From Bigelowiella natans CCMP2755 (lineage: Eukaryota > Protista > Cercozoa): 64,000 nucleotides of DNA. The notes beneath the pieces are model-generated. The model was not told where the DNA came from and searched no databases. It saw nothing but the letters and a program-made list of their open reading frames with translations. Where the stretch lies: contig ADNK01000007.1 in NCBI GenBank assembly GCA_000320545.1, positions 71,527-135,526 of the forward strand, given 5' to 3'. The position numbers and the translations under genes are program-made. Below are positions 1 through 64,000 of this stretch, one piece after another. Each line of letters begins with the position of its first letter. Position 1 is the stretch's first letter.

Positions 1-3000
1 ATGCATGATGACTATCAGGTTCAAAGAGCTTATATCGGAGATTCGCAGCAAGGACTGCGTTGTGATATTCGTCGTTGATTTGTTTGATTTCCACGGCACG
101 TTTCTGAATGATCTCGAGGAGATTGTCGGGGGAAATCCTGTAATTCTCGCCGCTAATAAGGTGAGAAGTTTATCGGCCTTCAGATCAATCGTGGCGATGA
201 CAATCGCATCTGTTTGTTGCCCGCATGTGTTTCGCTCGAAGTATACTGTTATCAAAATCTTCTCTGGAGGATTCATAGGCTAGCTGCTAGCATCTTCCTC
301 CTCCTTCTCCTCCTTCTCCTCCTATATATATATATATATATATATATATATATGTATTACTCATCTCTAGGTTGATTTGCTACCGCCTAAAGCTAATCAA
401 GAGAGAACAATCAGATGGATTCGCAGGGAGCTGGTATGTTGTGTTGGTGGTGGATTGTGTACCCTATTCAAACGACGTAACATCAACAGCAACAAACCAT
501 CATCATCATCATCATCATTATCATCATCATTATCATCATCATCATCATCATCATCCCTTGTTTGGCTATACTTTTCGCGGTCAGGTGAGGTACCAACAAT
601 ACCAGCAAAAACGACGACAAAGACAGCGTCGGCAACGTCGGCAGGGCCATGAAGACGAAGATGACAAAGGTGGGGAAGATCAAGAGCCGCCCCCATTACG
701 CGTCGATAAGATACACCTTATCAGGTATTTGCTCGATTATAAATGCAGCTCCTATCTGCATTTTCACACACACACACACACACACACACACACACACACA
801 TACATACACACACACACACACATACAACAAACATCTTTGTCTCACAGTGTTTGTGTCCCTTCTTCCTCTTTTCTCAATAATGATGGTCATTATTATCCCT
901 ACCAAGCTCTATGAAAGGAACCAATGTTAAGGCGGTGTTTGACAACGCGCAGCAGCTCGCGTAAGATTATAAACACAAAACAACTGCAATTACAGTAACA
1001 CATTGATAAATGACTGATGACGATTAGTGAGGATAGTAAATCCACGCAACACACACAAACACACACACATACATATACGAGGGTAGTACTGAGGCTAGCG
1101 TTTCAAGCTCATATCTAAGCATTTATCAGTGGGAGCGACAAGGATATCTACGTGATAGGCGCTGCGAACGTTGGTAGGAACGATGACGACAACGATGAGC
1201 TATTTCTTCTTTCCCCATTCTCCTCCCTCCTCCCTCCTCCTCCTCCTTATGATATATTGAACTGCATCTATAACAGCACTCATTCGGCGACATCAACGTT
1301 TAAAAGATAGTGTACGATAGTAACACAATAAAAATGTGATGGTTTTGATGGTTTTGCTCTGAAATAGATGGACTCAACTTTGGGAAAAAATCTAATATGT
1401 TTGTGTGTGTGTGTGTGTGTGTGTGTGTGTGTCCGTGTTTGCGTGGCCATTGCTCTAACGACACAGGGAAGTCCAGCTTCGTGAACAAGCTACTGAAGAT
1501 CTCTCAGTGATAAATAAATATATAAATAAATAAATAATACGTGTCTACGATATAAATTGAATAGAGAAATAGCGATAATTATAATTATGATGATTATGAT
1601 TGTGATGATAATAAGGAGGAGGAGGAGGAGGAATTGGGGTTGAAGGACAGAAACAGCCTGTTCGTTCAATTTCTTCCTCGAGAAAAGAGAGGATGATAAA
1701 TGGAGATTGTGTTTTATGTCACACCCTCAAACTGCATCATCATCAACACCCACTACTTCTGCTGCTACTACTAGTCAAACTAATAACAATAATAAGAATA
1801 AATATAATAATAATAATAATAATAATAATAATAATAGAAATCAATTCTGACATCACGAACAACTACCCCAACTTTCTCAATACCTATCTAGGGAAATGCG
1901 TGAAAAGGAAGAGGCTGCTGCAGCAGCAATAGAGACAGATGCAAATGAGGACGGCAAAGAGATTCTGCAACGGATGCTTGATGACGAAGACAACGTGTCC
2001 CTAGACCTCGATGACTATCTAGATCTTCCCGATCTGGAGAGGGAAGGGGGAGGAGCCATCGACGAGGATGATGATATTATTGATGCCGAAGAGATACGTG
2101 CTTGGAGGAGACGGAAGAAGATGAATCGTAGGGCAAAGAAGGAGGGGGGGGGCAAGAAGGATGCGATCTCTATTAGGTAGTATTAATGCTGTCCTGTGTT
2201 GATTACTTATGGTTACGTTCGTGGAGGGTAATGGTGTCGCTCTGGTCTCGTCTATTTATTCTCTCTCTCTCTCTCTCTCTCTCTCTCTCTCTCTCTCTCT
2301 CTCTATCACACACACACACACACACACACACAGACAAACGACACTCTATTCTGTGTTGTCGTCATCGTGGTCTATCTTCCTTCCTGTGCTGTTGTTTACA
2401 TTTCTATTGCACCTACCATCGTTATCTCTCATCAGCCGGCTTCCTGGGACAACGTTAGATATGATCCGCATCGCAATCCAAAGTCAGTACTCCACTCCCC
2501 CGGCCCACACACACCATATAGCGAGAATCCTTACACCCTTTGCCCTTCGTGCGTATCTGTTTTGAGCGCTGTTCTTTTTTTCCGTCTTCTTCTTCTTCTT
2601 CTTCTTCTTCTTTATATTCATATTCATATTCATATTCTTCTTTTAGGCGGAACGAACAGTATATACGATACACCCGGGCTGATAATGCCCTCGCAATTGA
2701 CTCACAGGCTCCTCCCTCAAGAACTCGAGGTGTGTGTGTGTGTGTGTGTGTGTGTGTTTCTCTCTCTCTCTCTCTCTCTATATATATATATATATATATA
2801 TATATGTGTGTGTGTGTGTGTGTGTGTGTGTGTGTGTTTGTGTGTCTTCAATTATAGATACTACCGTTGAATATATCTTTTACAAATATGAGGGGTGCAT
2901 AACTATATCTTGTTCTTGTTGCGCACGGAATACATCGAGATATAACTCTTCAAGAATTGTCCCAAAGCCATTGGCACAGAAACTCACTCAACACTCACGC

Positions 3001-4374
3001 ACTCATATCAATCCTTCCGTCTTCCTGCCCAGGATGTAGTTCCGTCGAAGCGTATCTCTTACGAGTCCGTGGAGTTGAAGCAAGGGAAAGCATTACTTCT
3101 CGGAGGTAATAGTAGCAATCACAACCAACACAACATGGACGACGAGAGCAGCTGCAAAGCACCTGAGTCACATTTCTTTCATTCCTCATCTCTCACTGCC
3201 GTCCATGACTAGGCCTCGTCGAGATAGAGATGATATCCGGGAAACCTTTCTACTTTACGCTCTTTATTAGCAAGGCGATTACAGTAAGTTTGTCGTAATG
3301 ATAATAATGATGATGATGGTGATGATGATGGTATTGATGATGAATGGTGGATAGTGGGGATCACGACACACAGGAACAATGGGATTCTATCTCTATCTCT
3401 CTCTCTCTCTCTCACTCACTCACTCTCTTGTACGTTGTTGTAGATTATGACTTCACTATGTGTTTTCCTAGGTACATCCAACGCGCGCTGATAATGCTGA
3501 GAACTATGTCTCGAAGCACGGGGGTCAGTAAATATAAGAGGAGGAGGCGGGATGATGATCATTATACAAAAGATTACTACTTTTCGTCGTACATATGTTT
3601 GATTCTCCATGTCGCCTTACAAGTCATATCGGAAGGATGAACTACACCACTAAGCGATCATCACAACAAAAATCCAACTTGATTGCAGGAAAGTTATTGA
3701 CACCGCCGTTCTCTCAAGAGCGATTCATGGAGCTTAGGCCGTTTAAGGAACATCGATTTCGGTCAGTGTTGTGATATGCGGTTTCAGAGAAACCCATGAT
3801 AGAGCTGGAGCAGAGCAGTTTCAGTTGTGGGGCTTCATTTCCTTATTAGTTATCACCAATATTACTGCCTTCCTCCTGCTTATTCTTCATATCTCCTCAG
3901 GGTGCGGGGCATCGGCTTTACACAGGCCTCAACAGACATCGTACAACCATACAAATAAACGACCTCACCAACCTCATATACCGTAGACGGCATGATCGTT
4001 TCTTCATGTCATACTGTTCTCGATGTCGTATTTAGGTTCTATCTGGCCTTGGTTGGGTGTCGGTCACCGGCAGTGGGCCGTGCGAGATTAAGGTTGCAGC
4101 ATACCGATCATACTGTTCATGGGCAATAATATTTGAGTAGACATGCACTCACGTATACGCACACGTAAACAGCAGAAGAAGAGGGGATGGGAGCAGGGGA
4201 GGGGAAAGTTAGAAAACACTGTACTCTCAGATCTTTGCTCACATAGAGATGTTATCTTTGTGCTAGGTGTCTGGCCCGGAAGGGATGGCCATATTCACCC
4301 GGGAACCTCTCATGCCGAACGAATTCAAGAGGGGAAAAGCGTCGAAGTTCACCGGGAAGCGCTTCACCAGATAG
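1..4374 (+). CDS. NOA1: NOA1/YqeH-family circularly permuted GTPase, multi-exon, 5' end outside the window
   Basis: Spliced exons give VVDLFDFHGT...NPVILAANK|VDLLP (G4), IYVIGAANV|GKSSFVN (G1), SRLPGTT (G2), YDTPGL (G3) in G4-G1-G2-G3 order. The C-terminal domain reads GKALLLGGLVEIE, VHPT, DIVLSGLGWVSV, ending FTREPLMP...KRFTR with stop 4372-4374. Confidence 0.9.
2730..2845. repeat. Compound intronic microsatellite (GT)n(CT)n(AT)n(GT)n starting at the splice donor
   Basis: Read directly. It represents many intronic CA/GT, GA/CT, AT, CAT, TAG and CCT tracts in the window. Confidence 0.9.
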
Positions 4375-63800: not shown

Positions 63801-64000
63801 GTGAATTGACGTAGCGACTCCCTGCCTGCTTTTCTATCTCATGTTGGATGGACAAAAAAGGGGGATATCGGACACGAAAGAAACAGGACTTCTTCTGGAC
63901 AGAAAAGGGGATAGGGGGGAGAAAGGAAACCAGGAGCACACTCATCTAGCGGAGAGTATGAAAGATATGAGAATAGGGGGGGAGGGGGGGGGGGGGGGGG
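60876..64000 (+). CDS. DYNC2LI1: Cytoplasmic dynein-2 light intermediate chain (IFT dynein), 3' end outside the window
   Basis: EKNVVYLGRKRSGKST (P-loop), STTSIDYDY, GGISMAKLL, LVVLVLDLD, PLPIPVLVIGSK, MARALRSVCHAYGVSLLYT, GMDSFAKIG, in the order seen in DYNC2LI1/D1bLIC. Confidence 0.85.

Follow-up and report, generated by a model that had tools for sequence, protein, structure and literature searches.

The window analyzed in this study, a 64-kb stretch of Bigelowiella natans nuclear DNA taken as a whole, was examined for an earlier claim that 15 consecutive genes alternate perfectly between the two strands. The density of 15 genes per 64 kb agrees with the published mean for a genome of 21,708 genes (PMC12730881). 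The strand was settled for 10 of the 15 models, namely genes 1-7 and 12-14, through homology, spliced transcripts, and the long open frame of gene 2, and all 10 strands matched those in the earlier note. A codon statistic, computed with a model fitted to a clean training set and expressed as plus-strand (S+) and minus-strand (S-) scores, pointed in the correct direction for all 10 independently settled genes.

Gene 1 (1..4400, plus strand), the start of which lies upstream of the window, encodes a NOA1/YqeH-type circularly permuted GTPase; positions 2-280 on the plus strand matched PDB 3H2Y and 3EC1 (E 6e-6 and 4e-5, respectively), and the codon scores were S+ 85.2 and S- 32.9. Gene 2 (5043..9650, minus strand; putative extent beyond 7.1 kb) is an orphan comprising an open frame of 452 codons at 5766-7121 on the minus strand. 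The same frame resumes at 5046-5762 past a TAG positioned at a likely splice acceptor, the codon scores were S- 84.4 and S+ 44.7, and a homologue was sought but none was found. Gene 3 (10000..13600, plus strand) encodes a sugar transporter (MFS), as revealed by plus-strand Pfam Sugar_tr matches at 12714-13130 (2.3e-18) and 10080-10412 (1.2e-6). Gene 4 (14600..16600, minus strand) encodes a C1GalT1-like GT31 glycosyltransferase. Its two matches to PDB 7Q4I (C1GalT1) are colinear on the minus strand, with residues 147-232 corresponding to 15132-15845 (2.8e-14) and residues 81-129 corresponding to 15853-16503 (0.006). Gene 5 (17400..23200, plus strand) encodes an ankyrin-repeat protein verified at 20.9-21.3 kb and represents one gene or two; designed-ankyrin PDB entries matched 21140-21337 on the plus strand (E 3e-6 to 6e-5), and the codon scores were S+ 116.3 and S- 50.8. 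Gene 6 (24107..26000, minus strand) encodes a PlsC-type acyltransferase, with minus-strand Pfam Acyltransferase matches at 25291-25998 (2.5e-7) and 24605-25189 (0.002).

Gene 7 (26464..35789, plus strand), which encodes a WD40 propeller, a coiled coil, and CH domains, is a single gene. In addition to Pfam matches to WD40 and CH, the JGI transcript L013 (2189 nt) aligned with the plus strand in 22 blocks spanning 28257-34649, and a canonical GT-AG boundary was resolved at 13 of the 21 junctions. The homologue P0001 (1614 aa), which is one unbroken 4.8-kb ORF elsewhere, matched both ends of the gene at 26823-28286 and 35157-35693.

At the other end of the window, gene 12 (54079..55400, minus strand) encodes a universal stress protein, with a minus-strand Pfam Usp match at 54082-54354 (5e-7) and codon scores of S- 35.3 and S+ 5.7. 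Gene 13 (55897..58750, plus strand; ATG at 55897) encodes a fumarylacetoacetase; residues 117-155 of PDB FAH corresponded to 56456-56776 (2.7e-15) and residues 362-401 to 58500-58688 (1e-9), both on the plus strand. Gene 14 (59453..60645, minus strand) encodes a small protein of 204-215 aa that is JGI Bigna1 84824 (100% identity to P0151) and exhibits hydrophobic stretches by eye. Its transcript L014 (1010 nt) comprises four exons (60645-60375, 60318-60288, 60225-60145, and 60079-59453), and the three introns between them are of the GT-AG type when read on the minus strand. L013 and L014 each span a single gene. Claimed gene 15 (60876..64000, plus strand) was oriented by the codon statistic (S+ 79.2, S- 14.3) and carries a P-loop-like motif at 61094 on the plus strand; DLIC was sought by Pfam and PDB and no match was obtained. 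The names DYNC2LI1 (gene 15) and RSL1D1-like (gene 11) were found to be without domain or PDB support.

G|GT...YAG is all that the verified introns have in common, and the shortest exons measure approximately 35 nt; ordinary gene predictors fail in B. natans because of such tiny exons and weak splice signals. Homology searches were performed with single exons or ORFs as queries rather than with joined spliced models. Pfam searches of ORFs of at least 50 aa on the claimed strand returned no match for genes 1, 5, 11, 13, and 15 because the exons were too short, and PDB sequence searches with single exons outperformed Pfam on ORFs. Own-genome family searches for FAA_hydrolase, DLIC, Ribosomal_L1, and Galactosyl_T yielded just one weak FAH match in the window, and an exact look-up of 10 ATG-to-stop ORFs in the protein collection found 0 of 10. 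A self-trained two-strand gene-finding HMM applied to the 135-kb contig broke up genes, placed known exons on the wrong strand, and was dropped; a first self-trained codon model drifted to low-complexity ORFs and was replaced by the clean-set model. Three-base periodicity as a coding signal was swamped by trinucleotide repeats. Several long ORFs in the window read through microsatellites, and an ORF of 262 codons lies antisense to a proven gene. Nothing resembling human sequence was noticed in the window. Small genes absent from all models may exist in the window, and the long models of genes 2 and 5 could conceal additional genes.

Alternation was demonstrated at 10 of the 14 junctions in the window (1/2 through 7/8 and 12/13 through 14/15), with the strands of gene 8 at junction 7/8 and gene 15 at junction 14/15 taken from the codon statistic alone. 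No proven same-strand neighbor pair was identified among the 10 resolvable junctions, and the window contained no long same-strand gene runs, verified neighbors never lying on one strand. Because 10 junctions were shown to alternate, the chance of the run is approximately 2^-10, or approximately 1 in 1,000; the odds of 1 in 16,000 given previously were therefore overstated. The claim of a perfect 15-gene alternation was confirmed at these 10 junctions but not in the block containing genes 9, 10, and 11.

We further analyzed this block (39.7-53.1 kb) together with gene 8. Gene 8 (36850..39650, minus strand) is an orphan placed by the codon statistic (S- 47.9, S+ 5.4), and its minus-strand ORFs at 38306-39012 look protein-like; neither a transcript nor a homologue was obtained for it. 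Claimed gene 9 (39900..46000) is an unsupported orphan model that had been assigned to the plus strand and leans to the minus strand (S+ 59.6 vs S- 85.4), the sole model of the 15 to run against the earlier assignment. Its ORF at 43996-44625 (630 bp, 210 aa) had no match in the JGI transcript contigs in any frame, a weak negative for want of a positive control. Pfam domains and paralogues were looked for in the gene 9 block, including paralogues of two of its minus-strand segments, and none were found. A multiplex protein query of eight stacked unrelated orphan ORFs was blank on the database though working in simulation and is uninformative. The block contains many microsatellites, dense over 41-45 kb, where the TpA observed/expected ratio is high (approximately 0.86, a rough average of bins). 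Claimed gene 10 (46900..49120, minus strand) is a weak orphan model (S- 17.8, S+ 6.9), and its ORF at 47249-47869 (207 aa) likewise had no match in the JGI transcript contigs, again weakly for want of a positive control. The orphan models at 39.9-46.1 and 47.2-48.9 kb had been named as the weakest links of the run. Claimed gene 11 (49431..53050) is weakly assigned to the plus strand by the codon statistic (S+ 46.4, S- 30.9); its ATG at 49431 is followed by a leader that resembles a signal peptide by eye, and Ribosomal_L1 signal was absent by Pfam, own-genome family search, and PDB.

These results bear on whether the alternation is strong but broken within the window, a reading to which we give nearly an even chance. 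Under this reading, 39.9-46.0 kb would not be a plus-strand gene; it would instead be noncoding DNA, a minus-strand gene of its own, or the 5' portion of a gene 8 extending far along the minus strand. A same-direction junction would then span the spacer at 46 kb, formed either by genes 8 and 10, which both lie on the minus strand, or by genes 9 and 11. The codon scores of gene 9, the missing transcript match, the blank multiplex search and absence of domains and paralogues, and the TpA ratio and microsatellites at 41-45 kb are all in its favor. However, the codon scores in the gene 9 block do not rise above noise (within verified gene 7, the wrong strand scores up to 11.8 per kb), and the transcript absence possibly reflects just low expression. 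Moreover, the mean gene spacing predicts approximately three genes in the 13-kb block, and the 46-kb spacer resembles six others that are tail-to-tail wherever checked. The block may contain one same-direction junction, and the strand run in the window is probably near-perfect rather than perfect. Among the genes in the 71 kb of contig that precede the window, one junction appears to be same-strand.

The spacers provided a second line of evidence. Each of the seven claimed tail-to-tail junctions, and none of the head-to-head junctions, contained a spacer rich in CTAG, CATG, and TGCA. The density of these palindromic tetramers was 32-63 sites per kb in the tail-to-tail spacers, compared with 11.1 elsewhere in the window and 0-17 in the head-to-head spacers. 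The tail-to-tail spacers are at 4400..4900 (31.9 sites per kb), 13600..14500 (34.4), 23250..24100 (31.7), 35790..36850 (44.3), 45950..46900 (38.9; between claimed genes 9 and 10), 53050..54080 (63.0, the densest of the seven), and 58750..59660 (39.5). They are 0.5-1.1 kb long, and their starts at 4.4, 13.6, 23.25, 35.8, 45.95, 53.05, and 58.75 kb are 5.7-12.5 kb apart. Every checkable segment between spacers contained a minus-strand gene first and a plus-strand gene last. Two-gene units bounded every 6-12 kb had been proposed, and the unit structure of divergent pairs between tail-to-tail spacers is real in the window. The seventh spacer overlaps the 3' untranslated region (UTR) of gene 14, the transcript of which reaches 59453, approximately 200 nt inside the spacer; the spacers are therefore partly 3' UTR. 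The bounding spacers had been described as terminator blocks, a role that we regard as their putative function. A visual search for poly(A) signals was set aside, and so was a 3-mer classifier of orientation applied to spacer halves, which was useless (4 of 10 correct in leave-one-out testing).

We consider it very improbable that the run arose by chance, or from orphan models placed in gaps to perfect the pattern, in a genome that is not unusual. Five of the 15 models are orphans set exactly where alternation required them, three models (genes 9, 10, and 11) are still unconfirmed, and the microsatellite read-throughs and the antisense ORF speak for the same explanation. Nevertheless, the 10 alternating junctions are independently evidenced, two of the orphans were confirmed (gene 14 by its transcript and gene 2 by its 452-codon frame), and the spacers mark the junction type without recourse to gene models.

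The genes of the head-to-head pairs 2/3, 4/5, 6/7, and 12/13 were all verified and are transcribed apart on opposite strands; in the pair 14/15, gene 14 is verified and the strand of gene 15 comes from the codon statistic. The spacer of this last pair (60645..60876) contains 4.3 palindrome sites per kb and measures 231 bp from the 5' end of the gene 14 mRNA (at or beyond 60645) to the first ATG of claimed gene 15 (60876). The other head-to-head gaps are approximately 0.25-0.8 kb, these being ATG-to-ATG rather than transcription start site (TSS) distances. Overall, the head-to-head spacers are 0.23-0.8 kb long and the tail-to-tail spacers 0.5-1.1 kb. No promoter motif common to the eight spacers searched survived multiple testing. 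A shared bidirectional promoter is the putative function of the head-to-head spacers.

The alternation could instead be real and without any promoter-sharing function, as a by-product of genome rearrangement through small inversions or inverted duplications breaking in scar-rich spacers or through insertions splitting tandem pairs; we consider this unlikely. The tail-to-tail spacers form a distinct, mutation-prone sequence class, the search for a common promoter motif was blank, and divergent pairs in Ectocarpus are not co-expressed (bioRxiv 10.1101/2020.03.09.980763), all of which would fit such an origin. However, random inversions push orientation toward 50:50 and not toward alternation, and some directional force would therefore still be required; the head-to-head spacers are also uniformly short, as promoter sharing predicts.

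On balance, we lean toward the explanation that the window is ordinary B. natans nuclear DNA and that head-to-head gene pairs, linked into a chain and having shared 5' promoter regions, are the usual layout of this genome. In this layout, two genes start back to back over a 5' spacer of approximately 0.2-0.8 kb, and pairs are joined tail-to-tail through a 0.5-1.1 kb spacer rich in CTAG, CATG, and TGCA; in the window, at least 10 of the 14 junctions follow it. By analogy with close divergent pairs in Ectocarpus, the short 5' spacer may constitute one nucleosome-free promoter region for both genes. Same-direction neighbors would be kept rare because, as we propose, read-through from the upstream gene would run into the promoter of the next gene. 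Paired 3' ends would send read-through into nonessential spacer DNA, which would then be free to gather mutational scars. The unconfirmed models 9, 10, and 11, the blank motif search, the same-strand-looking junction upstream of the window, and the chance of further genes within the long models of genes 2 and 5 stand against this explanation. We tentatively suggest, with a little less than even confidence, that approximately 90% of the approximately 21,700 nuclear genes of B. natans are in head-to-head pairs joined tail-to-tail.

If a head-to-head fraction of approximately 90% holds, no stronger rule of gene orientation would be known for any eukaryotic nuclear genome. B. natans would then use essentially only bidirectional promoter regions, same-direction neighbors would be poorly tolerated, perhaps because of weak Pol II termination, and the palindrome-rich tail-to-tail spacers would act as run-off zones. 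A genome-wide pattern would also provide a natural experiment on intrinsic promoter bidirectionality, on read-through as a constraint on gene order, and on gene-order evolution under that constraint. Strand alternation and palindrome-rich spacers could be used as gene-finding priors in B. natans, and the short head-to-head spacers are candidate compact two-way promoters for transformation constructs. The result for the window alone is modest and corrects the odds and several gene names.

A published precedent for strand alternation exists in brown algae, at approximately 60% (bioRxiv 10.1101/2020.03.09.980763; 10.1101/2024.02.19.579948). Divergent pairs in Ectocarpus account for 61.7% of the genes that flank TSS-adjacent intergenic regions, median spacers are 409 bp for divergent versus 2293 bp for tandem neighbors, and close divergent pairs have a nucleosome-depleted region common to both genes (bioRxiv 10.1101/2020.03.09.980763). 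Similar to brown algae (Ectocarpus, FDI clade), the B. natans window exhibits an excess of opposite-strand neighbors and short divergent spacers. However, in contrast to brown algae, all 10 resolvable junctions alternate in the window, and B. natans belongs to an unrelated lineage, Rhizaria. Its tail-to-tail spacers form a distinct palindrome-rich class that is not described in the two brown-algal papers.

Bidirectional gene pairs in animals, plants, and yeast are defined by opposite strands and a distance of less than 1 kb between the two TSSs (PMC2648788, PMC2670823). The B. natans genes resemble such pairs in their opposite orientation and in the short 5' spacer between them. In animals, plants, and yeast, bidirectional pairs are a minority class among same-direction neighbors, whereas nearly all B. 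natans genes appear to be arranged head-to-head by default, and tail-to-tail joining therefore follows at every other junction. Kinetoplastid polycistronic clusters consist of long same-strand runs with rare switches and special sequences at the strand-switch regions. The B. natans window shares with these directional clusters a nonrandom gene-orientation rule and special sequences where strands switch; unlike them, it changes strand from almost every gene to the next, and its genes are transcribed into separate spliced mRNAs.

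The strands of 10 of the 15 gene models (genes 1-7 and 12-14, numbered from the left) were fixed independently by homology, transcripts, or, for gene 2, a long reading frame, and all 10 matched the earlier note. On the plus strand, gene 1 encodes a YqeH/NOA1-type GTPase (PDB match, E 6e-6), gene 3 a sugar transporter, gene 5 an ankyrin protein, gene 7 a WD40-CH protein, and gene 13 a fumarylacetoacetase, two exons of which matched FAH residues 117-155 and 362-401. On the minus strand, gene 4 encodes a GT31 C1GalT1-like enzyme with two colinear exons matching 7Q4I, gene 6 an acyltransferase, and gene 12 a Usp protein. 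The orphan gene 2 (minus) was placed by a 452-codon frame that resumes in the same frame, for 239 codons, across a single TAG (5763-5765, minus strand). The surroundings of this TAG resemble a splice acceptor (...cttag/G), and it is probably an intron end rather than a read-through or recoded stop. The orphan gene 14 (minus) was placed by a 1010-nt transcript with four exons, whose three introns read as GT-AG on the minus strand. Gene 14 corresponds to JGI model Bigna1 84824 (estExt_fgenesh1_pg.C_10147), and its product is 100% identical to a transcript-derived protein clustering with EukProt EP00466 Bigelowiella natans.

Because a long chimera might conceal a same-direction pair, gene 7 was singled out for checking. 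The JGI transcript contig L013 (2189 nt) aligned to the plus strand in 22 blocks (28257-34649), beginning within the large WD40 exon and ending at most 0.5 kb short of the CH exon. A homologue of 1614 aa (43-50% identity) matches the WD40 portion at 26823-28286 as well as the CH portion at 35157-35693; in ENA metagenome data it is encoded by one unbroken, intron-free 4.8-kb ORF (scaffold KOPF15-1...scaffold_1632, 10001-14845). The architecture of WD40, coiled coil, and CH domain is thus conserved outside B. natans, and gene 7 is one gene. The homologous ORF adjoins a kinesin gene. L013 itself bears three separate ORF calls (88, 540, and 74 aa), and the match of the MMETSP protein P0156 (1094 aa) to the window ends after approximately residue 529; both observations point to retained introns, alternative splicing, or assembly chimeras.

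The window makes up the final 64 kb of its contig (135.5 kb), which belongs to an assembly of 91.4 Mb and 3,736 contigs. Its GC content is approximately 45%, and no part of it resembles human DNA. According to PMC12730881, the B. natans genome has 45% GC and 21,708 genes, which average 8.8 exons (159 bp) and 7.8 introns (184 bp). These figures fit the features of the window, and the mean spacing predicts approximately 15 genes per 64 kb, the total given in the earlier note. The L013 alignment revealed exons down to approximately 35 nt, introns of 75-325 nt, and a splice consensus of only G/GT...YAG. Intron size differed within the window, being 56-64 nt in gene 14 (60081-60374) versus 75-325 nt in gene 7 (28381-34311). 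Microsatellites crowd the introns and create long false reading frames: many long ORFs, among them those at 291-911 (+), 2232-2867 (+), and 20018-20497 (-), are translated (CA)n, (GA)n, and (TA)n repeats within introns, and a 262-codon ORF at 28182-28967 (-) overlaps, in antisense, exons of gene 7, a proven plus-strand gene. ORF length alone is therefore unsafe evidence in this organism. A self-trained HMM gene finder was unsuccessful because of the tiny exons, minimal splice consensus, and microsatellite-laden introns; hence, the models were tested one exon at a time, and exons were never joined.

For the remaining five models, we employed a codon log-odds score trained on clean coding sequence (5,209 codons). 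In leave-one-out tests it assigned the correct strand to 77% of 20-codon, 92% of 40-codon, and 98% of 80-codon pieces, and the summed score was correct for all 10 verified genes, 5 of which had supplied training sequence. By this score, gene 8 is clearly predicted on the minus strand (plus 5.4, minus 47.9) and gene 15 clearly on the plus strand (79.2, 14.3), as first read. The same orientations as in the earlier note were weakly favored for gene 10 (minus; 6.9, 17.8) and gene 11 (plus; 46.4, 30.9). Gene 9, previously read as plus, leaned toward the minus strand (59.6, 85.4). The names RSL1D1-like (gene 11) and DYNC2LI1 (gene 15) found no backing in Pfam, PDB, or own-genome family searches; some motifs recognized by eye in gene 15 serve as leads only. 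The 630-bp ORF of gene 9 and the 621-bp ORF of gene 10 had no match in the JGI transcript assemblies, and a multiplex protein search on the orphan ORFs was also blank. The confirmation step of the transcript scans relied on six-frame translation, which made frame and strand immaterial; nevertheless, these scans are weak evidence, as they had no positive control and would also come back blank for a poorly expressed gene. The orphan models that the earlier note considered its weakest links are among those left unconfirmed.

Independently of the gene models, palindromic tetramers marked the type of junction. CTAG, CATG, and TGCA together reached 32-63 sites/kb in seven spacers, compared with 11/kb in the rest of the window and 0-17 sites/kb in the seven head-to-head spacers. 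The rich spacers coincide exactly with the seven claimed tail-to-tail junctions, at 4.4-4.9, 13.6-14.5, 23.25-24.1, 35.8-36.85, 45.95-46.9, 53.05-54.1, and 58.75-59.65 kb. Four have both flanks verified as plus then minus, two have one flank verified, and that at 46 kb has neither. The gene 14 mRNA reaches approximately 200 nt into its adjoining spacer, indicating that these spacers are partly 3' UTR. A weaker tetramer patch (38875-39474, peak 17 per 400 bp) lies within the 5' part of gene 8, so the marker also occurs away from tail-to-tail spacers. No palindrome-rich spacer interrupts either of the long models 2 and 5, making a concealed 3' end there less likely; undetected small genes in the window or splits of these models may still exist.

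Taken together, 10 of the 14 junctions (1/2 to 7/8 and 12/13 to 14/15) alternate on evidence, and none was shown to be same-direction. The four others (8/9, 9/10, 10/11, and 11/12) depend on unconfirmed models. The perfect 15-gene alternation originally proposed therefore stands in part, and its odds of 1 in 16,000, which presuppose that all models hold, give way to approximately 2^-10 (1 in 1,000) for ten junctions under random orientation. Alternation at all 14 junctions has somewhat less than an even chance, whereas exceptions very likely number one or two at most. In the 71.5 kb upstream on the contig, a Rae1 model scored as minus (plus 35.9, minus 64.3) and would therefore lie head-to-head with gene 1. 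Within -25.4 to -17.4 kb, a spacer rich in palindromes (-20.7 to -19.9 kb) separates the 5' end of a minus-strand frame of 1489 codons from minus-leaning coding sequence farther right; this looks like a putative same-direction junction and a possible counter-example to strict alternation.

The earlier note suggested that the layout may consist of repeating units around shared promoters, a reading that is partly supported. Strands, spacings, and spacer classes were demonstrated; the sharing of promoters, termination, and selection are inferred. Most likely, short promoter regions would be common to both genes of a head-to-head pair, and same-direction neighbors would stay rare because transcription running on into the promoter of the next gene is selected against. 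The 5' end of the gene 14 mRNA lies 231 bp from the next ATG, a distance consistent with this reading. No common promoter motif was found across 8 spacers, which speaks neither for nor against it.

We found no published description of this layout in B. natans in the literature searched, the 2012 genome paper lying outside its coverage. The closest parallel in the literature is Ectocarpus, a brown alga in which 61.7% of the genes bordering TSS-adjacent intergenic regions are in divergent pairs, median spacers are 409 bp for divergent versus 2293 bp for tandem pairs, spacers below approximately 600 bp have one nucleosome-depleted region in common, and divergent partners are not co-expressed (bioRxiv 10.1101/2020.03.09.980763). 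B. natans seems to take this arrangement much further. Overall, the observation is confirmed in part, and its interpretation has partial support. The pattern represents an extreme and new form of a known genome organization.
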